Below are positions 6,529-20,644 of a DNA stretch of 20,644 nucleotides, piece by piece. The position numbers and the translations under genes are program-made. Each line of letters begins with the position of its first letter. The first letter of the stretch is position 1. The notes beneath the pieces were generated by a model. The model saw nothing but the letters and a program-made list of their open reading frames with translations. It had not been told where the DNA came from and did not search any database. Source of the DNA: Paraphysomonas bandaiensis (lineage: Eukaryota; Protista; Chrysophyceae); contig CBFFRP010000332.1 of NCBI GenBank assembly GCA_965644295.1, positions 1-20,644 on the forward strand, written 5' to 3'.

Positions 6529-8110
6529 TTTCGGTGTCCCAGATTTTATATGTACTGAGCCTTATCGGACTGCAAGTTCGTGATGTAACATCTTGCAGCT
6601 ATTAGATAAAGCTTGGTGGAATTTTGATGTAGGGTGCTGATGGATAACTGAGCAATTAAAAGATGTAGTGGTTTCATTTTTATTATATGTTAGTGTTACT
6701 GCTGTGGACAGTAGGTACCGCACCGTATCGCTGATTCAGTTCTTGGATTGTGGGTAATAATACATTTTTCATCCAGCTGAGTGAAATGATTAGTACTGCA
6801 ATAAGCTGTAACATTGTAAATATTCTTTAGTTCCTATTACCTATCGCTACATGGACTATTCTATTTGAACTATGGAATTATTAATTCCATTCATATCCAG
6901 TAAGCTTTCGCACTTTATTGGTACCGCAGACCAGGTTGTTGTTGTAACTTACGGCAGTGCAATAAAGTCCCTTGCGTATAACATACTTTCGGTCCAATGC
7001 AATGTGTACTATAATATTTAACCAGTATCAACTAAATACAAGTTCTGTCCATTGGAATATTGAAGAGTGCAAGCGATAATGTTTAACATAATCTGCTGCA
7101 AGTATAGTATAATATCGAAATTTTACAAGACGTTATATTGGGAAACTCGTTTCGCCAAATGACAACTTGTAGTAACAACGTTGCGGAACATCGTCTTATT
7201 TTCAGTATAGGACAGATGTAAAATACTTATAATGCCATTATATCTGATAGGCACACGATTAACACTGAATTGTCCTTCATTCTCTCATAGTGCAACAACT
7301 GCACTGCACCACTAGCGTCAGTATGCTCTTTTCATTTCTCCGATAAAGCTACATTCCAATCCGAATAAACGTGATAACCTGTCTTGAAAAAGATTCCGCA
7401 TGTGGCACATGTGTGGAGTTGAGCGGTGTGCCGAAGTCAACATGTCATTCCTGCAAACGAAAGAATCCGTACACAACTGTGTGTGTCAGGTGATGGTCGA
7501 TCACAAACATTGAATCATATTCATTTCATTTCTTCATGATGGACGAGAATACTAACTCCAAGGATGGATATATCATACAGTTCACTACGACGTACTCAGG
7601 AACTCGAGCTGGAAAAATCCAACATTTATATTTTCATACTCCAGAAGATCCTGAATTTTTAATTTCAGAATTCGAAATACTGACAGAATTATGAGAATTC
7701 CGAATACAGTATTGGGGAATTCTGAATTTGTAGAGTATACAAAAATTTGTTGAGTGGAATACACCATTAAATACATTGTATTTCAGTCGGAAGTGGCATA
7801 ACGGCAGACTCACAACTTTGATAGAGTACATACCGCATACCATACATGGCATACGGCGTACATACAGCAGTACTTTATCACTGCAGAGCCCATTCCAGAA
7901 CAAATACTGATTTTTGATCCAGCCTATACCATCATCCTACACAGTACACAGATAGTGTACAGCTCTATAGTAATCTATATATGCATGTTGTTTCATGTAA
8001 TTTAATAGTATCCACTTATTCGTGTATACTGTATATAGATAGTCTGAGAATTATTTTCACAACTGAAGTTAATCTCCCCCCTCTAGACTAATATCTCTAC
8101 TCGTAGAACA

Positions 8111-11100
8111 ATGGCAGATCATGCCGAGGAGAAGGTCGCCCCCACACTGGATGGGCATCATAAGAGAGAGAGAGTTAAGAAATATTTATTTAAACGCCCT
8201 CTACCATTGAACACATGGGAAAAGCAAGAGCATCGCTCTGAAAGTTGGATGGAATTGTTCATAGATTTATTCTATGTTGCTTTTTTTCTTAAACTGGGTG
8301 ATATCATGCACACCTGTGGAACCAGCGCTGATATTATCACATACGTGGCAAGTGTATTTCTGGGTGTCTATATGGCGAAGTTTGACTTCGATCAGTACAT
8401 GAATAAATTTGTGAGCGAAGATTTAGTTCATAGAGCCTTCTTTTGTGTGTATTCTGTGGGTCTTGTTGTGATGATCTTAGATGTCAACGAGTCTTCGGCG
8501 GTGAGAGTTGTCTATGTGGAATTATCGTATGAAATAAAAGTGTAACATTTTTGGTCAATAATATGTATATGTATAATTGTGGTGTCACTATGATATATTG
8601 CCGTATGATAGTCTGAAATCTGTTCGTTGTACAGTATGGAGACAATGATGAAAGTGGCAGCTATCATGACGATGCTCCATATGATGACGATCACCGCCGT
8701 CTCGCTGGCGGGCCCGTTGGTGATCTGCCCCTCCATTGTCCAGAGGTCTACTCCTATCTGGCAGGGTTCACTGTAGGATGGCTAATCACACGGATGTCCA
8801 TCCTTGTAATGTACTGCATTATATACATATACGTGAAACCACAGGGACCCTATGTATTTGCATCCAAGGCCCCAATTCTGTTAACAAGTAAGTGATGCGG
8901 TGTTTTGGAACGCTAGCAATTACAGCTGCTGGAATTTCAATGGTAGTTGTATTACGCTATAGTATTACAAAGCAAATGCTGCTGCCATAGCGTCATGTAA
9001 TTGTTTGATATTGTCAGGCATGGCCATCATGTGCAGTAACTACTTCGTTCCAACGAGTGATTTATACACTCATACATACATAATCATGGCAGCTTCATTA
9101 GTTGAGTTTTTAGGGTGAGTGTTTTTTTGCACTATATCATGTCAAGAATATTCTGTAAGTCCCAAACGATAGCTATCTTACTGTGCAAAACTGATACTTC
9201 AGTTACTGTGATCTATGCGATAATTCGTTTTATTAGATGGGCGGTATGGGAAGTCTTGGTGTTTGGTTCATGGATCATTAAGAACGTTGGACGCAGGTAT
9301 GTACCGTGAGTTCGTAAACGGAAGTTTGGGTTGTAATCATAAATTATTACTCGGCAGTGCACTGATTCCAACTAATGTTCATCATCATGCATCAAGAACT
9401 GGTACCTTTGTCATGCTTGTGCTCGGTACGACATAGTGTTCCATATCATGATCTGCGTCTCAAGTGGATCTATGTTTTACAGGCGAGGCTGTCATTGCGA
9501 TCCTGACCCCAACACTACTTAACTCTGGTCGAATTTATGCATTTACCCTTCTTGGCTCGCTTCTTATTTTTTTTCTGGCTGTGCTGGTATGGTTGTTATT
9601 ATTTTCGTTATGGGTGTACTCTTGCATATATTTTTATGTGACTACTAATTTGGTTTTTAGTACTTCGACGTCCAACCACAGCAACATGCAGCTCATGCCT
9701 TGGGAATATCTCGAAGCAAGGGAATGTTATGGATATGTCTCCATCCATTTTTATCATATACGTTATTTGGTAGGTTTGCCAAGATTGACCTATATATGAA
9801 ATGCGCGACATTTGTTTTCCACTTGATGTTATGTATATTATACACTTCTTAAAATATGCTGCTGTATGCATGCATGCGCGAATTTACTGTTTTATTGCAG
9901 GCGTCGGTGTCTCGATTAAGCTTATATATGAAGATTTACGCTTGGTTTGAATTATATATGCGTTATTATTTCGAATTAACATTTAAATTCAGCATGAACA
10001 TGACGACCAAAACCAAGTTATGCTCAGTATATTTTTGGGATTGTCTATTTTCCTAATGACTCTTATTAGAGGCTCTCATAAGAGTAAGCGACAAGTTATG
10101 AGCTTCTGAATTACTAGTGCTGACATATTATTATTATTGACAGCTCATTTCACAGACGGCGGCATATTTACTCTGTGTCTTCGATGTACAATTGCTTCTT
10201 TACATATGTACGTGATCGCTTTGGTTGTGTATTTGATGGTGTATTGTAAAGTGGTAATATTTCTTTGGGTTGTGTACAGAATCTTTGGAGTGGCATTTTC
10301 GGGAAGTGTGAGATTTTACAATGATGAGACTACCTTGTCAATCCATCTCTTTCTAGTGTAAGTATTTATGTGATATGCTATGGGCCTTTTACTGTGATCT
10401 TGGAATGTGTGTTTTGTAGTGTGTAATGATAGCTGCACATGGTAGGTTCATCACCCTGATTGTTGATACACTTAAGTATCGTCACCTGGAGACACGCCCT
10501 GCAACCACCCCCAGAATGTCCGTTCCTGCCATTCGTTCTTCGCTTCCCACTCGAAAGCCTACGTCTACTGCCTCCACTAACAACCTCTACGGGTCTAGAC
10601 GCTCTCTACAGGGATCTGTCCAGGGTGCTGCAGAGATAGTTGATAGGGTCCCCTTACGTAGAGCATCGAGCGGTACGGACTCTCCAACTACTATGGCAAT
10701 GAAAACGATAATTGACAGCAAACCTGGGGCAAAAATACGCCAAATTCGTCGCCGTAATTCATTAAACGAACTGGACGTCATAAGGTCCGCTGAGGATATG
10801 GAGTCTAAGGACGGCACGAAGTCACCTTTCGGGTTAAATCGTAGTCCAGTAGCCCCCCGTCCAATGTCTAGTCAGAGGGGTGTGGGTTATCACAGTCGTA
10901 GCAAATCTGATCGTGTTATTTCGTCCGCAAGGAAGGGGAGCGGTCGTCGTCCAGGTGGTCATGGACTCGATCGATCCCCTCATTCCCAATCGCCTTCGCA
11001 GCGTTGGCCGATGTGGAGTCGTTTATTGCCATCTATAAGCTCCAATTCGATTGATGCAGACGATCTGGGTACACCGCCTAGCGAAGGGCCGAAGAAACGG

Positions 11101-11664
11101 CGATCCACAAGCACAGGTGATACGGCCTTGTATGAAAATAAGAGTATCAGCATGAGTGAACTCTCTGCCGACAAGAATACGTTAGATAAGAAGCTATCCC
11201 CTCCGTTACAAAATTCGGACACACCTACTCCAGAGGAAGCACAGGAAAAAGAAATGGATGAACCTGGTTTAAGTATGAGTGAGTTAAGTATTTCCCGTCC
11301 ACCGGAAGGTGTGCAGGCTGTGATGTTAGGGGATGATGAACGTACAGAGAGACAGTCAGAGCATATGGTACCGGTTCCAGAAGATGAGGTTTTGAATGGC
11401 GATGAAATCATTCAGGAGGGTGCATATCAAAGTTTGCCTCCTGAAGAGTTTGAAGATGCCTTAATGTATGAAATTGACGAAAATAACCAGTTGGTGGAAG
11501 TTCAACACACAGGAACTGATGAAGACGACTACTATTACGATGAGCAATACATTGAGGTGGTGTATGAGGACGAAGGGGATGATGACTACAGTGAGGATGA
11601 AGAGGTTGAAATTGTCATCGAAGAAGAGCCTGAGGAAATCGCTTCCCATATCACATGGCTCTAG
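8111..11664 (+). CDS. LtrA-like multi-pass membrane protein, paralog 2 (~858 aa, 12 exons), with a highly acidic C-terminus
   Basis: Exons 8111-8500, 8635-8887, 9018-9114, 9237-9296 (alternative in-phase donor after 9305), 9358-9425, 9483-9586, 9661-9769, 9901-9944, 9993-10083, 10144-10207, 10280-10357, 10446-11664; total 2577 nt in frame. Motifs: SWMELFIDLFYVA, YMNKFVSEDLVHR, HHASRTGTFVMLVLGEAV, YFDVQP...HALGISR...WICLHP, which resemble LtrA W-x-ELF-x-DL, (E)R-x-G-x-F-xxxx-LGE and YF...H motifs. Confidence 0.85.
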
Positions 11665-12807
11665 TTTTTGTTACTAATTATCGAGTTCCACTTGTGAAAG
11701 CATTACAGCAAGTGTATATCCGTATTCATGGGGCACATTTACAGATATCGACTGTTTGTGTTTGTAATAATTTGATTGCTCTATTAGTTTTACACAACTA
11801 TGTACACGCTTTTATGACTACAACAACATGGAATAACTAAATAGCAGCGCATACTAGTACCTCTTTATCGTGTGTGCATGTCGGCACATGTGCGGCGGCT
11901 ATGTACTGCATATTTGAACATTGTTAACGTGTTTCTTCTGAAACAACTAAATTAGAAAATAAATCATATCACCCTGAGAGATGGTGTTAACTACGTAGTA
12001 TTAGCATTGCTGCCAGAGATACGTTTTTGTTTCTAAAGACAGGGTGCTAAGAAATTCCAAGCAGTGCCAAGTGTCAGATGCTTCATTGCTGTCATGTGAA
12101 CAGCATGGAAAAAGGAAACATCTCGAAATTTTTGACATTGCTTGTGATTTGTCTGTGCCACTTCTTGCATTTGAACCGCCTGTCCAATTATTAGAAATCT
12201 GTGCGTGAATGGTGTTTCTGTCACCGTCCTCTCTCATATTGCATCGTACAATCGCATATACGACACAGAACAAGGTGAATGTACATCATCGAAGATGCTT
12301 GTCCTCTGATAGGGCCGTGGCTTTCACTCAGACCAGGTTCACCAGGACTGTCAGATCGCTGATTATATTGTCACAAGAAAAGAGCTCTTGACAGCAAACT
12401 GATTTGTATAAATCCATCTCCAGTTATGTAGAGCAGTTGTTTGGTCGAGATTCATGTCAGTATGATCCACAATGTTCACTGTTTCTTATCACCTTAAGAT
12501 ACGTTCATGTCCTCATCCATGTGGACCAGATCCGAAATATGATATATACGAGTACGAGTAGTGGTACATTAGTACGTTAGTACAGCGGTATCAACCAACA
12601 ATGCGAGCGACAGTAGTACTACAGTACATATACAGCAGTACATGTCAAACGAGTACCTGATCATCACTTCGTATCCACTTTCTTGCTGTGCTATCCTGCT
12701 GCCTCACCTGGCTGGAAGCAACCATCACACCACAAGAAGCAGCGTGTACACTAGGCATCAGTGTACAATCGTATAACAAAGCCGTGTATCGAATAAGTTA
12801 ACGGGAC

Positions 12808-15734
12808 ATGGCGGCTATTAATGAAACGGAACAGATGCGGTGAGTGGAGGAGTGGATATATATATGTATTGACCGCTCCGCTCTTATGACTCTGTGAATA
12901 GGACTGTCGAGCAATCCGTGACGAAGGTAAAGGAACAAGCATTTTTTATGAAGCGAGCCATGGTACTTCGACAGCACTGTGTGGTGAATGGTATGATGTA
13001 ATTGTCTGTGTACAGGATGGGGATAACGTGAAGCTCGCACTAGACCACGCGACTGAAATGCTCAGAGAGTTACGTACAAACCAACTGGCCCCCAAGCATT
13101 ATTATGAGCTTTATATGAAAGTTCTAGATGAGATGAGAGAAATGGAAGAATACTTTTCAACTCTGCAGCGAAATGGACACAAGATTCAAGAGCTATATGA
13201 AAAAGTTCAATCGTGTTCCCAGGTACTTCCCCGCCTGTATTTACTCTGCTGTGTGGGTGGGGTCTATATTGACTCCCAGGAAATTCCTGCAAAGGATATT
13301 CTGAAGGATTTAGTGGACATGATCAAAGGGGTACAGAACCCGATGCGTGGACTCTTTCTCCGCAACTACCTTAGCCATGTGACCAAAAAGCGTCTGCCTG
13401 ATACAGGTTCCGCTTTCGAAGGGGTCGGTGGAAATGTACAAGATGCCTATAATTTTGTCCTCCAAAATTTTGAACAAGCCAATCGCCTCTGGGTGCGACT
13501 GCAAAACCAGGGGGCAAAAGAAGACCGTAAAAAGCGCGAAAAAGAACGTCAAGACCTACGCATCCTAGTAGGTACGAATTTGGTTCGACTGAGTGAACTA
13601 GAGGGTTTGGATTTGCAAGAGTATCGAGTAAATGTTCTTCCTAAGATCCTGGAGCAAGTAGTCTTGTGCAAAGATACAATCGCGCAGACATATCTCATGG
13701 ACTGCACTATACAGGTGTTTCCTGACGAATTCCATCTAGCCACTCTTGAACCTTTTTTGCATACATGTGTTAATCTCAAAGAAAAAGTCAATGTACGATC
13801 TATTCTAGAGGCCATGATGGATCGCTTAGCTAACTATGCAGCCAACAACACCGGTCAGATCCCCTCCGAGATTCATGCGTTCAAAATGTTTAACGACTGC
13901 ATTACAACTCTCATTGAAAATCGAACGAATTTGACACTCACAGAAACCTTGCGGCTTCAAACGGCTCTCACTAATTTTTCATTGAAGTGCTACCCCAACA
14001 AGCTCGACTATGTTGCCCACTGTCTGGCTGCTAGTGTGGCACTTATAGAAAAAAGTGACTTTCAAACATCCCTGGCTGCTGAAGGAGAGCATTCGACAAC
14101 GAAGTCCCTTCGTGACACAACAGCACAGATTGAGCAACTACTCTCAGTCCCCCTATCCTCTCTTGCCCTCAAGGTTCTTGATCTTCAGCAATATGCCACT
14201 CTTATGTCTTTCCTTCCGTGGGGAAATTGGAAAGACGTTGCTGTTTCCCTTCTGCGCAGCGTGGTTGCACGGAACGCCCCACTGACAGAAGTGGACCAGG
14301 CGGAACAATTGTTTGCAATCATTACCCCACTTCTGAAGGACCCCGACGGAACCACAAGAGAAGCTGATGAGGACGGCACGGAGCCACCAGTTGATGACCA
14401 ATTTAAGGAAGAACAAGTGCTTGTCGCCAAAGTTGTGCATTTAATGCAGAATGATGATACCGATGTACTGCTTCGCATATATGTGGCAGCACGTTCCAAA
14501 TTCATTAACGGTGGCGCTCAGCGCATTCAATTCACTCTCGTCCCTCTCGTATTTGCCGCATTGTCCTTGGCGAAGAGGGTACTTGCAAAAGAGAAAGCGG
14601 CTGAAACGGAACAGGACGTCGCCCCTCAGTACAGTTCCCGAAAGGTGTTCCAATTTGTTATCGAGATTGTGACCGCCATGGCCACTTCTCATCCAGAAAT
14701 TTCAATGAAGCTTTTTCTTCAAGCGGCACAGGTATCATGATAAACTGACTATTTGACAAATATCCGTATACCGTTGATGTGTGTTGTTTTATACTTGCTT
14801 GCATTATCAGGCGGCGGATGCATGCAATTTTTCTGCTATTGCGTATGAGTTCGTAAAAGAAGGATTATTGATTTATGAGTGTGAGATTAGTGAGAGCAAG
14901 TCTCAGGTGCGAGCTCTGACTGCTATCGTTGGGACGCTTTTGAACTGTCGCAACTTTCCCACGGAGGACTATGAGGCATTAATTACCAAAACAGCGCAGG
15001 TACACGGAGTCTTATCCTTCATTATACAGTGTCAATTTAGTTTATTTCTTGTCGTATAGTATGCAAACAAGCTCTTGAAGAAGCCCGATCAGTGTCGCAT
15101 GGTTACTCTATGCTCTCATTTGTTTTGGCCTAAGGACCCACCCATAGTTGCTGATGGTGAAGAAGAGCCAGCTGTACACGGAACTAGATACGCAGATTGC
15201 GACAGGGTGTTGGAGTGCATGCAGCGGTCACTCAAAATTGCATCCGTGTGCAATCCCAATATATTTGTTGAAATCTTGGACAGGTTGGTAATTGTTATAT
15301 ATTGGACTATGTGTTTGTGGTAGTCTGCATATCATATGTTATTCTTATCAGGTAATATGACCTAACGAATTTGACAGATATATTTTCTACTATGAAAACA
15401 ACAACCCTCTTATCCACGTGCGGTACTTGAGCGGTTTAATCGCGCTTATCAACGAACAAATAGGGTCTGAAGACGGAGGACAGGCAATGGGATCAGCAGT
15501 AAAAGCTCACTATCGTAATACCCTTGGTCAGTATGCTTTTCCTTATCTGTATTACTAAATTGTGATGGAAAATAAAGTAGTATCTTACGGTATTGTGTAT
15601 ACCACTGTGGTCTTATTTTGACAAGTTTGTTCACGTGATCTGTTACCTTATCTGCTGTTCCATTGACAGAGTACATTCGTAATCGCCAGAGGTCTCCTGA
15701 AACTAGTGAGAAATTTTCTGCGATTCAGTTGTAG
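12808..15734 (+). CDS. VPS35: Vacuolar protein sorting-associated protein 35 (retromer cargo-recognition subunit), ~811 aa, 7 exons
   Basis: Exons 12808-12839, 12902-12962, 13016-14731, 14811-14999, 15060-15283, 15378-15526, 15670-15734; total 2436 nt. Diagnostic PRLYL motif, plus ELRT..L.PK.YYELY, GVQNPMRGLFLRNYL, LVGTNLVRLS, QVFPDEFHL, LLKKPDQCR, CSHLFW and RVLECMQRSLKIA. Confidence 0.97.
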
Positions 15735-16323
15735 TGGTCTATATTATATCAACTCGAGCCTTTCTGAAAATATCTAAAATACCACGGGATGAATCAAAGA
15801 TTATATAGGTACCTGTGTTGCGTTATTGCATAATAGTGATATGCGCGGGCTAAGTAGTGCATTGCTTCACAGGTTGATTTGTGCATGTGGTATCATGCAT
15901 GGAGTAGATAAATAAGATGCAGCACTGATATGGTATTTGAGCAGGTGCAATCATTTCTGTCTCAACACATTTGTTATACTTGTCTTTCCCATTCCGCCAT
16001 CGATTCAAATTGATTGTTATGTGGGTTTTAAAGTATTATATAGACAACCTCTTGACATATCAGAACTCAAATCGGACGACTCAATCGTTATAATTTTTAT
16101 AGTTTGAGTGGTAAATTAATAAGTTTTCTGCAGCATCGTTCAAATATTTATTTTATTATTGCGTTCACAGCACTAAGCTAATGTAGTCTGTACTAGCATT
16201 GTAAATGACTTAACGCCTAGCAGGCAGTCTCTAACATCTTGTCTTCAAGTGTTACTAAAACCTAAAACGTATGGATCAATGGTAATAGCTATTATTCAAT
16301 ATTATGAAAGCATACACAACATT

Positions 16324-17526
16324 TCAAAAAAGTGACAACAGGAATGTATAACTTCTCCCAACAACATGTAAAGCCCACCTACGCATGCTATTCAAAATTG
16401 TAGTATCAACTAATTCTCCAACACTCCATACACCTTCATACACTTCACCATTGAAATATGTCATACGACCGAAGCCTTCAATACTATTACTACTGAACTG
16501 ACCTTCATAAACAGCACCATCCGTGAACTCCATTCTACCAAAACCGTGTCGCTGATTACTTTGCCACATACCAGTATAAGATTCCGAATTAAAAGTCATT
16601 GTACCATGACCATGAATGTTGTTTTCCACCCACTCTCCTGTGTATACAGCTCCATCGGCAAATTTCATAATACCTATGCCGTGCATTTTATTGCCTTTGA
16701 ACTCTCCTTCGTAGATGGATCCGTCAGTAAGTGTCAGTGTACCATGACCAGATTTCTTGTTGTGATAGTAATTTCCATTAAATACTTTCCCGTCAGGATA
16801 TGTCATAACCCCGTGACCATGCATGCTATCATCTGCCCAATAACCGTCGTACACTTTGCCACTGTAAAAATGCATTGTTCCTTTTCCATGCTTAACTTCG
16901 TCCTGTGCATATTATTATCAAACATCAATGTAATCCTACATTCAAAGAACCTTCCATGAGCCCTCATACATATCACCAGAGGGGTATTTCATCGAGCCTA
17001 ATCCATTGATACGATTGTGTTTGTGCTCGCCATTGTATACGCTGCCGTCAGCAAACTGAATTGTACCACGTCCCTCTCTAGCATTTTGATAAAACTCTCC
17101 AGTATACTTTGTTCCGTCGCTGAACACCATCACTCCATGACCATGCATTTTACTATCCACGAAATCACCCTCGTATATCTTTCCGTTGGCGAACACGTAC
17201 TTACCCTTCCCGGTGACCTTCCCATTGCTGAACTGGCCCTCATACACAGACCCATCAGGATAAGTGTACTTTCCATAATTATGTATTCTGCCCTCTTGAA
17301 CTTCTCCTTCATAAGATGCCCCATCTGCAAACACTAATTTACTGTGTATCCCTGTCTCTGTCTCTGTCTCTGTGTGAGGGTCTGTGGATATATAGGAGTG
17401 TGTATCTCTGCATGTGTCTGTATGGGCGTCATTAGACTGACCCCTCACTGCTGCTGTCGTATAACAGCTCGAGGTGATAATGCATGCAACAATAAGTACA
17501 TGCATATCTGTTACTGACAGATCCAT
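16324..17526 (-). CDS. MORN-repeat protein (~384 aa, 2 exons) with an N-terminal hydrophobic signal-like segment and a hydrophobic C-terminal tail
   Basis: Exons 17526-16951 and 16902-16324, joined by a 48-nt phase-0 GT-AG intron (16950-16903): YEGSWK|DEVKHGKGTMHFYSG. It carries about a dozen 23-aa repeats of type Y-x-G-x-F/W-xx-N/G-xx-H/x-G-x-G-x-M-x-F/Y-x-D-G. Confidence 0.9.
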
Positions 17527-17573
17527 GCATTGCCATCTATGCGTATGGCCGCTTCAAATAGAGGAGAATATGG

Positions 17574-17777
17574 CTGTACCTGTACACCTGTACCTGCGCA
17601 TCTGTCGTACCTGTGCATCTGTTCTATACACTTGTACCTGTGCATCTGTCGTACCTGTGCATCTGTCGTACCTGTGCATCTGGTATACAAGTACTACGAC
17701 AACATTTCTTCTTGTCGTGTGAGCCGATAGCAGATGCACAGGTACAGGTGTATAGGGACAGATGCACAGGTACAGGT
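17574..17777. repeat. Foldback-like array: five direct copies of GTACCTGTGCATCTG followed by two inverted copies
   Basis: Forward units at 17590 (1 mismatch), 17607, 17634, 17651 and 17668. Inverted units CAGATGCACAGGTAC at 17731 and 17759. Confidence 0.9.
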
Positions 17778-18783
17778 AAGATCTCAGTGACACTCACGAG
17801 AGAGTGAGAACAGAACTATCATGACATTCTTCCCACTCAACTCTACTCTCAGCAGCATTCCCAGTACAGGATATATGCTTTGTAGAGCGATAGCAGGTGG
17901 AAGCACTGCATGAGCTGATTAGCTGTTGAATCAGTCGATGGTGTTGAGTCTCCATCACGAAACGAATTACTATCATCCGTTTGAGACGACTATAGCACTG
18001 CGATCCTGATATGGAAGCCAACATGATAGATCATTGTCAACTTTTTTATTATAGTCTACACACTCACAGCCTCTGCTTCTTACAATCCGATTGTTGCAGG
18101 TAGCAGTGTGATTTGCTGGTTAGATTTTGTTGTGACCTAATAACTGTATAACAATATGAGTATGTATGGGTATGGTTGAATATATTGCAGGTGCATATTT
18201 AGCTATAAATTAATGCAATAACCATTATGGAATAATAGTAGATCCACCCTCTACTAAGTCGTAGTAGCACCACGTCGTGGTGTTTCCGGGATAAGTACCA
18301 GAATTTGTTTTCTGAGAAACTAATATGTACCGAATTTGTAGCTAGCATGCACTATTCTCCCCACTCACCACTTGTGTTTCTTTTGTAAATGTATTGGGGC
18401 CTGCAATAAATATGCATCTGGAGTTTAGAGTTGCTTGCATTAGTCGATCATCCGGGATAGCTATAGACTTCTAAATTGAGAAAATATCGCTCAGGCTTAT
18501 TAATTAATATTTTGCTTGAGTTATAGATGCATGAGTTTACATTTATCGGCATCTGCTGGGCCAATGTAATGTGAATACAGTGCTATGTTTTACCATACTC
18601 TACTATCTACTATCTAGTCTTGTTTGCTCCTGACTCAGCTCATTGAGATTATAACAAAGATCTGACACTATTCTTCAAGCAAATTGCATTTGTAATATCT
18701 ACGTCTTCCTCAGTAGGATTTATTTGAGCAAAACTGTGTTAGAATTTATCTTACCTACTTTTGATACATATCCTACCTGACGA

Positions 18784-19479
18784 CAACACCCCGGCCATCA
18801 CCAGTAGTGGCGCCCATACAAACGAGGCCCGGGCGTTGTCGTGACTGAACAGGGTTTGCTGCTCTTGCGGGCCGGGGGCAATCTCACCCCGTTCGGCGGC
18901 GCGCTCGGCTTCGGCCATAGGGCCAAAGTCTAGTTTCTTGAAGGCGATCAGCGGCACTATGGCCACCGCCAGCACGGCATAGAACTGGAACGGAATGGCG
19001 GCAATAAAGGCTTCCCAGTCGGTCAGCGGCAGCGCAAGGGCGGTAAATTCCTTTTGCAGCAGACCCATGATGTACACGCCCCAGCCGATAAAAGGCACCA
19101 TAATCGCCACCGGCGAGGCGGTGGAGTCGATGATGAAGGCCAGTCTCTGGCGCGACAGCGTGAGCTTGTCGAACAGCGGCCGAAATACCGGGCCGACGAT
19201 CAGCGGCGTGCCGAGATCGGAAAAGAAGATGACGATACCACCCAGCCAGGCTGCCACCTGGGCCCGGCACTTGGTGCTGACCCAGTGGGTGACCTTGCGG
19301 GCAAAGGCCTGGCCACCACCGGACTGTTCCATCAGCGCCACAAAGCCGCCGATAAATACCAGCAACACCAGTACGCCGGCGTTATAGCTGTCGGTCAACT
19401 GACCGACCAGATGGTCTTTGACCAGAATGCCGAAGTTGTCGGGCGGGTGCAGCCAGTCGTTCAGCATCACCACGCCACT
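18784..19479 (-). pseudogene. Internal fragment of a bacterial Na+/H+ antiporter NhaC-family (ion transporter superfamily) membrane protein
   Basis: LVFIGGFVALMEQSGGGQAFA, AWLGGIVIFFSDLGTPLIVGPVFRPLFDKL.LSRQ.LAFIIDSTASPVAI..PFIGWGVYI and IPFQFYA...DFGPM are motifs I recognise from NhaC-family transporters. It is truncated at both ends. Confidence 0.85.
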
Positions 19480-19833
19480 GGCGAGTTCCACGCCCAGCTC
19501 GTCGAGGCCCAGGGTTTCAAACGGTGTCTGTTTCGCCTTCATAATATTGGGCAGCGACGCATAGCGCGGTTCGTTCAGCCGCAGATCCGTAGTCACCACC
19601 GCCGGCAGCGTCAGCGCCAGGGTCTGCAGGCCGCCATCCACCTCGCGAGTGACCTGCACTTCGTCGCCCTGTCGCTCGATGCGGGAAGCGAAGGTTTCCT
19701 GCGGCCAGTCGGTGAGCGCGGCCAGCATCTGCCCGACCTGATTGTTGTCGGTGTCGATGGACTGCTTGCCGAGCAACACCAGGCCGGGCTGTTCCCGCTC
19801 AACCAGTTTGGCCAGCAACCTGGCCACCGTGAC
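19471..19833 (-). pseudogene. etfB: Internal/C-proximal fragment of bacterial electron transfer flavoprotein beta subunit (ETF-beta/FixA family); lacks the N-terminal ~95 aa and the last ~35 aa
   Basis: LVLLGKQSIDTDNNQVGQMLAAL..PQ.TFAS...VTREVDGGLQTL.LTLPAVVTTDLRLNEPRYASLPNIMKAK matches the ETF-beta signature. There is no native start or stop. The sizes of the missing parts are estimates from typical ETF-beta length. Confidence 0.92.
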
Positions 19834-20115
19834 ACACACAAGCAGCTTTCGCAGCGTTAGATAATTGGATATCAGAGTTAAGCACTGACTCTTAAACGCC
19901 TATTGCTAATGTAATATCAATATATTGATATCGGCATCATCTAATTCAATCATAAGTCCAATGTTCCTGATAATCTTCTCATTGGAGAATTCAGCCGTTG
20001 GTGGATCATTCTCCTCCAGCCGTAGTGTGTGTGTACAACAATAATGGACTAGAAGCATCGGACAGCCAAACTTATCATTCTTATTTATTCAACAGGATGG
20101 CATCCAATGAACAAA

Positions 20116-20531
20116 TTTGATGATTTAATTCGTCAGTACCCTGGTATAAAATTCACCTGGGTGCAGACGCGGAAATTGTTCAAAATGCAGATTTCGAGAG
20201 AGCAGTAGTCAAAATTCAGCGCGGTAGGGAAGAAGAACTGAACTGCGCTGAAAAGCACAGGTGCGACGCTTTTTTTAAATGATGTACCTTCACACGAAGG
20301 TGAACTTGATGTGAAGAGAAAGATGAGGAGGAGGAAGACGAGGCCATTCGTTTACTTAAAGACAACCAAAAGCGCCGTAAAGCACGCATCAAACTTCCAA
20401 CACGGTATCGTTGCATGAAGAATATTTGTATAGCACTACCAATATTTGTGAGAGGTTGTTTAGAAGAGCTAAGATTGTTATGACTAGATTTTCCTAGACA
20501 CCATGAAATGTTGAATTTTCTGCGTGAAAAT
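20116..20531 (+). mobile_element. Degenerate hAT-like DNA transposase, C-terminal part (dimerisation-domain region), several frameshifts
   Basis: Piecing frames together gives FDDLIRQYPGIK/HLGADAEIVQNADFERAVVKIQRGREEELNCAEK...RRKARIKLPTRYRCMKNIC/STTNICERLFRRAKIVMT/HHEMLNFLREN. This resembles the T-S/T-N-xx-ERLF-x-x-A-x-xxxT...EMLxFLxxN end of hAT-like transposases as I recall them from stramenopile genomes. It is absent from the ORF track. No terminal inverted repeats were identified. Confidence 0.72.
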
Positions 20532-20644
20532 GTTAATATTTCTTTAATATGAGATTATAGTCCAGAAAGTTATTCTAAAATCTATCAGTAAAAGTAAAGG
20601 TAATTAATTGGCAATATGCAATGCAATGCTTGATTAATAATAAC

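Follow-up and report, generated by a model that had tools for sequence, protein, structure and literature searches.

An apparently recent insertion of two joined Oceanisphaera gene fragments in the nuclear genome of a bacterivorous chrysophyte

The window analysed here, an entire contig (C332) of 20,644 bases from an assembly of 62.6 Mb in 669 contigs, is eukaryotic DNA of ~41% GC except for a 1,054-base island of bacterial DNA near its right end. The island joins 347 bases of etfB, the gene of the electron transfer flavoprotein (ETF) beta subunit, to ~700 bases of an NhaC-family Na+/H+ antiporter gene, in a single open reading frame (ORF). Its bacterial origin, its donor clade, its linkage to host DNA, its truncations and the sequences of its junctions establish it as a genuine nuclear insertion. 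We infer, with a probability of about 0.78, that it is prey bacterial DNA inserted by end joining at a chromosome break, and that the insertion is recent and non-functional. According to this explanation, two unlinked chromosome pieces would have been ligated to each other and end-joined into a break in repeat-rich intergenic DNA, where host repeat sequence would have been lost; their source would be a bacterium of the genus Oceanisphaera, near O. sediminis and most likely taken as prey. The common orientation and the in-frame joint would have arisen by chance (~1 in 6), the product would have been dead on arrival, and the insertion probably segregates with an island-free allele.

In composition the island departs sharply from its surroundings: GC content is 62.1% within it, vs 38.2% in the 1 kb to its left and 37.6% in the 812 bases to its right, and never exceeds 49.2% in the remaining 1,054-base stretches of the window. 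Boundaries of Logan contigs, taken from public sequencing runs that are described below, fall at the island's edges (18778/18779 and 19828/19829). The features recognized are as follows.

18779-19832, minus strand: whole bacterial island, 1,054 bases, GC 0.621, apparently confined to one of two alleles (GC profile, blastn to Oceanisphaera loci, Logan contig boundaries)
19486-19832, minus strand: fragment of etfB (electron transfer flavoprotein beta) (Pfam, NCBIfam, blastn)
19485, minus strand: frame-keeping filler base at the inner joint, matching neither gene (compared without gaps to three loci of each gene)
18784-19484, minus strand: fragment of an NhaC-family Na+/H+ antiporter gene (Pfam, blastn)
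18751-19839, minus strand: chimeric ORF of 362 codons, with a GTG start in host sequence and a TAA stop 28 bases past the island

Each piece aligns to its source gene in one ungapped blastn block. The etfB piece corresponds to gene nucleotides 286-630 (residues 96-210 of 249) and is without the N-terminal third and the C-terminal arm; the NhaC piece, from window position 19484 to 18788 (18784 with some loci), corresponds to gene nucleotides 98-794 and thus to residues 33-265 of 501, under half of the transporter's length. Within the chimeric ORF, residues 4-113 match PF01012 (ETF; Pfam E 1.5e-21), covering profile positions 76-179 of 181, and a match to PF03553 (Na_H_antiporter; Pfam E 6.3e-10) follows. 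NCBIfam agrees with Pfam on the families, at scores far under all full-length cut-offs (for the etfB piece, 60 vs 445). The initial annotation, made from the letters of the window, had described a GC step at both ends of a ~1.05-kb island and an in-frame ETF-beta-NhaC chimera truncated at both ends of both genes; the blastn blocks and the single ORF agree with that description, and its coordinates (18781, ~19475 and 19833) are right within ~10 bases. Since the ORF reaches neither the ~250 aa of a full-length EtfB nor the full set of membrane helices of a ~500-aa NhaC, of which it holds residues 33-265 only, it is, as far as its sequence tells, not a functional member of either family in the working sense.

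Both halves lead to the same genus. At the amino acid level, the ETF half shares 89-92% identity with Oceanisphaera EtfB, and the transporter half is 94% identical to Oceanisphaera proteins of 501 aa and 97% identical to an unnamed Logan protein (P0001). Compared with O. sediminis JCM 17329, nucleotide identity is 97.99% for the NhaC piece (14 of 696 positions differing; locus L125) and 92.5% for the etfB piece (26 of 347 differing; locus L038). Maximum-likelihood trees place the island as sister to O. sediminis in both halves, with support of 100/98 and 87/94. On this evidence both halves nest in Oceanisphaera (Aeromonadaceae, Gammaproteobacteria) and have a common donor taxon, in line with the proteobacterial origin first proposed for them.

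The two source genes are not neighbors in that genus. etfB and NhaC lie on separate contigs in all five Oceanisphaera-type genomes, and their positions within those contigs put them at least 39-52 kb apart. No match spanning both halves is present in any of the five genomes, searches of 5.8 billion protein clusters with each half gave no chimeric etfB-NhaC protein, and the pattern of the inner joint has no exact match in the JGI metagenome contigs. These results agree with the statement in the initial annotation that these are separate genes in bacteria, with no fusion known. Unlike the bacterial EtfB and NhaC proteins, the island's halves are incomplete and fused, and the fusion was found in no bacterial record.

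These absences also bear on whether the two pieces were already joined when they entered the host, by way of a donor rearrangement or deletion, a plasmid, a gene-transfer-agent particle or a vesicle, so that a single 1.05-kb fragment was inserted. The pieces do share orientation, frame and clade, as such a history would have it, but orientation and frame together amount to a 1-in-6 chance, and the joint is missing from the genomes, the protein collection and the metagenome contigs alike. A joint made in the donor would, moreover, wreck two housekeeping-type genes, and a blunt joint with a single filler base is what eukaryotic end joining typically leaves. We regard joining before entry as quite unlikely.

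Linkage to host DNA is documented by sequences assembled independently of the window. We compared it with Logan contigs of four public runs (X1, X5, X8 and X10), which carry four organism labels and come from four studies dated 2019-2025. The island is present with 0 differences in X1, X8 and X10 and with one single-nucleotide polymorphism (SNP) in X5 (18818 A>G), which shows that the X5 copy evolves separately. A single X5 contig (record 19; 1,110 bases, depth 65) covers positions 18749-19858 and so all three joints: left host, etfB-NhaC and right host. The flanks in the four runs hold variants of their own (17830, 18031, 18157 and others). Within the assembly, a second contig, C193, overlaps window positions 9003-20644 in reverse at 98.0% identity, with 94 SNPs and many indels; its copy of the island shows zero differences from that in C332. 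When the assembly was searched with 15.7 kb of donor-type DNA (loci of 9.2 kb and 6.5 kb), no donor pieces appeared beyond the two fragments, so there is no co-assembled donor from which the island could have been mis-joined.

An assembly artefact, whether a chimeric read, a mis-join or contaminating bacterial reads, has to be weighed here, since the window, itself a short contig, overlaps redundantly with a second one, and since bacterial contigs with short etfB-like stretches occur at high depth in X5 and X8 (up to ~1,650 in X5) and show those two cultures to be xenic. These bacterial contigs, however, share just 50-80 bases with the etfB part (window 19532-19700) and then diverge, with loose ends at 19621 and at 19532/19583; departing from the island so soon, they do not represent its source. 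The closest bacterium known matches the island at just 92-98% identity, and no fuller donor sequence exists in the assembly. The host-island junctions and the inner joint recur in the contigs of all four runs with 0-1 differences and amid strain-specific flank SNPs, and the two assembly contigs agree. The depth of the island follows that of the host locus, at about half, and not that of a co-assembled bacterium. Spanned junctions and a depth that does not match a co-assembled bacterium were among the points on which the initial annotation had rested the reality of the insertion, and both are found. An artefact is almost certainly not the explanation.

The overlap between the two assembly contigs has features of its own. 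It corresponds to G000:C193:49088-60842, a dovetail at the C193 end with 137 indel bases, and the contigs represent either unmerged haplotypes or redundant assembly. SNP density along the overlap is very uneven, with stretches of ~1,000 bases that contain none. A 14-base indel separates the contigs at window position 18742 (C193 near 50990), 37 bases off the island's left edge; if both contigs are true haplotypes, an indel beside an identical island needs recombination or gene conversion very close by.

The insertion site lies among host repeats, and the junctions can be read to within a few bases.

18226-18729, plus strand: left flank, old and degraded, corresponding at 64-76% identity to the first ~660 bases of a dispersed ~1.2-kb host repeat
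18779-18783: left junction, five bases matching neither partner clearly (filler or eroded bacterial bases), between 18778, where the host sequence in common with the probable other allele stops, and 18784, where clear NhaC homology stops
19829-19833: right junction, ~5 bases, CGTGA on the plus strand, fitting both the etfB end and the host repeat (putative microhomology)
19837-19910, plus strand: right flank, end motif of a high-copy host repeat (summed depth, copy comparison)
20020-20644, plus strand: another dispersed host repeat, running to the contig end (941 candidate copies, 77-92% identity)

The left-flank repeat copy holds a high-copy 76-base piece at 18606-18681, and young copies of the same ~1.2-kb repeat are 97% alike. 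The right motif reaches a summed contig depth of 7,000-15,000, vs 57-180 for the single-copy flank, and has at least 14 other copies with no more than 3 mismatches. Other copies have GGTGACG ahead of the motif, and in them the motif is preceded by a conserved stretch; in the window, the island replaces that stretch. The island thus has on its left an old repeat copy cut short, and on its right nothing but the end motif of a different repeat, a structure that fits loss of host sequence at a break. None of the other copies of the flanking repeats is collinear across the site, the right motif being an end piece that occurs in several arrangements, and the empty site does not follow from them.

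On the right side, the X5 island contig ends at 19858, from which it follows that the 30 bases 19829-19858 also occur in another read sequence; because the etfB homology reaches 19832 and this stretch recurs elsewhere, the two partners probably overlap by a short microhomology. Neither a target-site duplication nor terminal repeats of the island's own were seen at its ends. Blunt ends, filler and short microhomology are the marks of end joining, and the early suggestion of capture during break repair fits the blunt joints, the 1-5 filler bases and the ~5-base microhomology.

The same surroundings might suggest that one of the flanking repeat families captured the island and moved it as transposon cargo, given that fragments of dispersed repeats lie on both sides and that the right motif occurs in inverted pairs elsewhere. 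Cargo of this kind is nevertheless highly unlikely: in the 62.6 Mb of the assembly the island occupies one locus only, represented by two contigs that overlap, the repeat fragments beside it are cut short and do not make a matched end pair, and the target-site duplication that was looked for is missing.

Further observations concern the repeats themselves. The 76-base piece in the left flank is not a tRNA. The ~1.2-kb repeat is non-coding and occurs at L106:994-2189 (G000:C426) and in ~100 other places; its copies are 96-99% identical, which suggests recent activity, and in L106 it is bordered at both ends by the same 13 bases, ATGAGGCACACAC. The inverted pairs of the right motif (50-75 bases; L119, L120 and L123) lie 120-830 bases apart and resemble the terminal inverted repeats that mark families of miniature transposons.

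The island appears to be a non-functional fragment and not a gene. Judged as a functional horizontal gene transfer (HGT) from bacterium to eukaryote, it nests in a bacterial clade and is linked to host genes (Vps35 and MORN), and it is without a complete coding sequence with a host-type start, both genes being truncated and the earliest ATG of the chimeric ORF standing at codon 39. Neither a host-type gene start nor an intron was found in the island ORF. The proposal in the initial annotation that the chimera could be raw material for a new membrane protein finds no support in these observations. RNA-labelled runs with the same species labels contain 0.00 of the words sampled from the stretch, and two other RNA-labelled runs contain 0.07-0.08 of them, at positions that may be flanking repeats.

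A random sequence of the same composition would be open across 351 codons with P ~4e-5. The open frame can be explained without selection, because both pieces are read in their own native frame across the island and an in-frame joint is a 1-in-3 chance (1 in 6 with common orientation), and it would have been kept because changes this few rarely make a stop codon. That the island is a working or nascent host gene, whether by encoding a new membrane protein or by serving the neighboring MORN gene as an exon or a regulatory element, could draw on this 362-codon frame, on the position of the island 1.25 kb upstream of the MORN gene and on the same strand, and on a dN/dS below 1. The ratio is 0.18-0.23 between island and sister, vs 0.02-0.16 between bacterial pairs, and divergence that took place in bacteria accounts for it. 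Replacements affect positions that do not vary among any of the bacterial sequences compared: two Gly in ETF (G>D and G>E), Lys twice (K>T), and Leu in the transporter (L>P). With the late ATG, two incomplete proteins, no host-type start or intron, next to no words in the RNA-labelled runs and an island apparently absent from one allele, a host gene is very unlikely.

The pattern of change is consistent with residence in the host. When changes were polarized between the island and O. sediminis with five outgroups, 31 fell on the island branch and 9 on the O. sediminis branch. Among the 31 island-derived changes, 18 go from GC to AT and 8 from AT to GC, an excess that fits life in a genome of 38-41% GC. 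A rough mixture estimate assigns ~1% divergence to the time after insertion, and the insertion seems evolutionarily recent. Dating by neutral decay was tried and set aside as unreliable, as the island's changes mix selected bacterial changes with neutral host changes.

Depth and graph structure both point to a second allele. Depths were taken from the Logan contigs, with the left flank as reference.

X5: island depth 65.5, left flank 180.8
X1: island depth 24-29, left flank 57
X8: island depth 2-2.6, left flank 4.9
X10: island depth 3.9, left flank 6.3

In all four runs the island reaches 36-62% of the left flank. The X5 flank contig extends to 18778 and the X5 island contig begins at 18749, an overlap of exactly 30 bases, which implies a fork in a 31-mer graph with branches that differ from 18779 on. 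The 29-mer ahead of the fork is found at this locus only in the assembly, and because it is unique the other branch would be sequence missing from the assembly and not a repeat copy. An X10 contig (record 11) matches 18547-18778 and continues with 265 letters unlike the window. A simple joint of 18778 to 19829 is not listed in X5 at the depth expected, and the host 29-mer adjoining the island has no exact match in the JGI metagenome contigs. Probably, then, there is a second allele without the island, which carries other host sequence in its place (probably repeat interior) and whose presence is deduced from depth and graph. The presence of the island on both assembly contigs could be taken to mean that both haplotypes carry it; depth and the graph fork make that reading uncertain.

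Several points weigh against insertion of prey DNA at a break as we describe it, or against parts of it. The evidence from depth and for heterozygosity is indirect, being taken from read-built contigs, and the depth ratio of 36-62% may be partly GC bias. The island's presence on both overlapping contigs is awkward for heterozygosity unless the contigs are mosaics or the strain is homozygous; polished long-read contigs can be haplotype mosaics. The halves diverge unequally from O. sediminis (2.0% vs 7.5%), which suggests that there were two related donors or that the donor genome was mosaic. The DNA may have come as free DNA, in a vesicle or by conjugation; prey is the most economical source because the host is a bacterivore. 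Amino acid replacements are fewer than pure neutral decay would give (10, where the mutation classes predict 19.7; P ~1e-4), a deficit indicating that most of the divergence arose under selection in an unsampled bacterial donor, and the time spent in the host is poorly datable.

Among known systems, the closest in form may be organelle DNA captured at nuclear double-strand breaks (nuclear mitochondrial and plastid DNA, NUMTs and NUPTs), which Ricchetti et al. in 1999 and Hazkani-Covo and Covo in 2008 reportedly described. Like NUMTs and NUPTs, the island is an apparently non-functional fragment and a mosaic of non-adjacent source pieces, unlinked in five of five genomes; its joints are blunt, with filler or short microhomology and no target-site duplication; and it sits in a repeat-rich intergenic location. 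NUMTs and NUPTs are also polymorphic in presence and absence when young. A link between break repair and plastid-to-nucleus transfer has been described (PMC12181080). The island differs in its source, a free-living bacterium that was probably prey, so that supply is occasional where organelle supply is permanent.

Lateral DNA transfers from bacteria to eukaryotes, which are mostly dead on arrival, offer a second comparison, with the Wolbachia inserts in insects and nematodes that Dunning Hotopp et al. reportedly described in 2007 as an example. Such inserts are integrated in the germline, un- or barely transcribed, and decay neutrally. The island resembles them as integrated bacterial DNA that is fragmentary and decaying. 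Their donor is an intracellular germline symbiont, whereas the donor genus of the island is a free-living marine heterotroph, and the island is a 1-kb mosaic of two pieces.

A third comparison is the 'you are what you eat' gene-transfer ratchet of phagotrophic protists, reportedly put forward by Doolittle in 1998. The bacterivorous host and the plausible food-bacterium donor correspond to it, and the island would represent its raw input step. Unlike the published cases, which are mostly old, fixed, intron-bearing and expressed genes recognized by phylogeny, the island is recent, truncated, chimeric and apparently polymorphic. Uptake of bacterial genes by phagotrophs is accepted (PMC4046809, on the scale of HGT in the phagotroph Monosiga; PMC4958254, a review). 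A narrow literature search returned no description of this island, or of any chrysophyte with a young bacterial fragment that combines two loci and may be segregating.

When bacterial genes are claimed in protists, the claim mostly rests on old fixed genes and disputable phylogenies, or proves to be contamination. Here a foreign fragment would have been caught early, with one half 98% identical to a living species and junctions that can still be read, present in several independently sequenced strains and probably beside an island-free allele. The case illustrates a mechanism of entry (end joining at a break), an input that is mostly useless, and the means of telling integration from contamination. 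Taken alone, the island is one dead 1-kb fragment without a phenotype; its value would rise if the polymorphism were confirmed and the island proved one of many across the genome. It might be a still-segregating prey-DNA insertion in natural populations and one example of a steady influx of bacterial DNA through break repair, a broader proposition that we hold to be unlikely. If it were true, the input rate of 'you are what you eat' would be measurable as islands per genome or strain. A further stretch would have the open frame transcribed from the promoters of the neighboring repeat or of the MORN gene, as a proto-gene for a membrane protein.

The identity of the host is read from its own genes on the window, two of which are recognizable.

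13028-14740: Vps35 exon (Pfam E 2e-190)
16324-17526, minus strand: exons of a MORN-repeat protein, the host gene nearest the island (Pfam PF02493, E 4e-35 and 9e-31)

The MORN gene shares the strand of the island and starts ~1.25 kb downstream of it. At the amino acid level, the Vps35 exon has 99% identity to one MMETSP transcript and 92% identity across 570 residues to another, from MMETSP1103 (NCBI taxon 36769, genus Paraphysomonas), the proteins concerned being P0313 and P0361; among the 120 matches listed, the next named relatives are the chrysophytes Chromulina and Ochromonadaceae, and none is a named diatom. Paraphysomonas is a colorless, silica-scaled, bacterivorous chrysophyte. By these protein matches the host is a Paraphysomonas-like bacterivorous chrysophyte and does not look like a diatom; for such a host the prey origin suggested in the initial annotation is apt.

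Rfam and tRNA scans across the window gave no matches. Directly upstream of the MORN gene start, positions 17560-17800 form a block of imperfect short tandem repeats, within which 34 bases at 17633-17668 are skipped in the X1 and X5 contigs, so that the length of the block differs between strains. An ORF at 8111-8545 has a weak match to the LtrA family (PF06772, E 1.4e-5, under the Pfam cut-off) and may belong, as an exon, to a host gene for a membrane protein.

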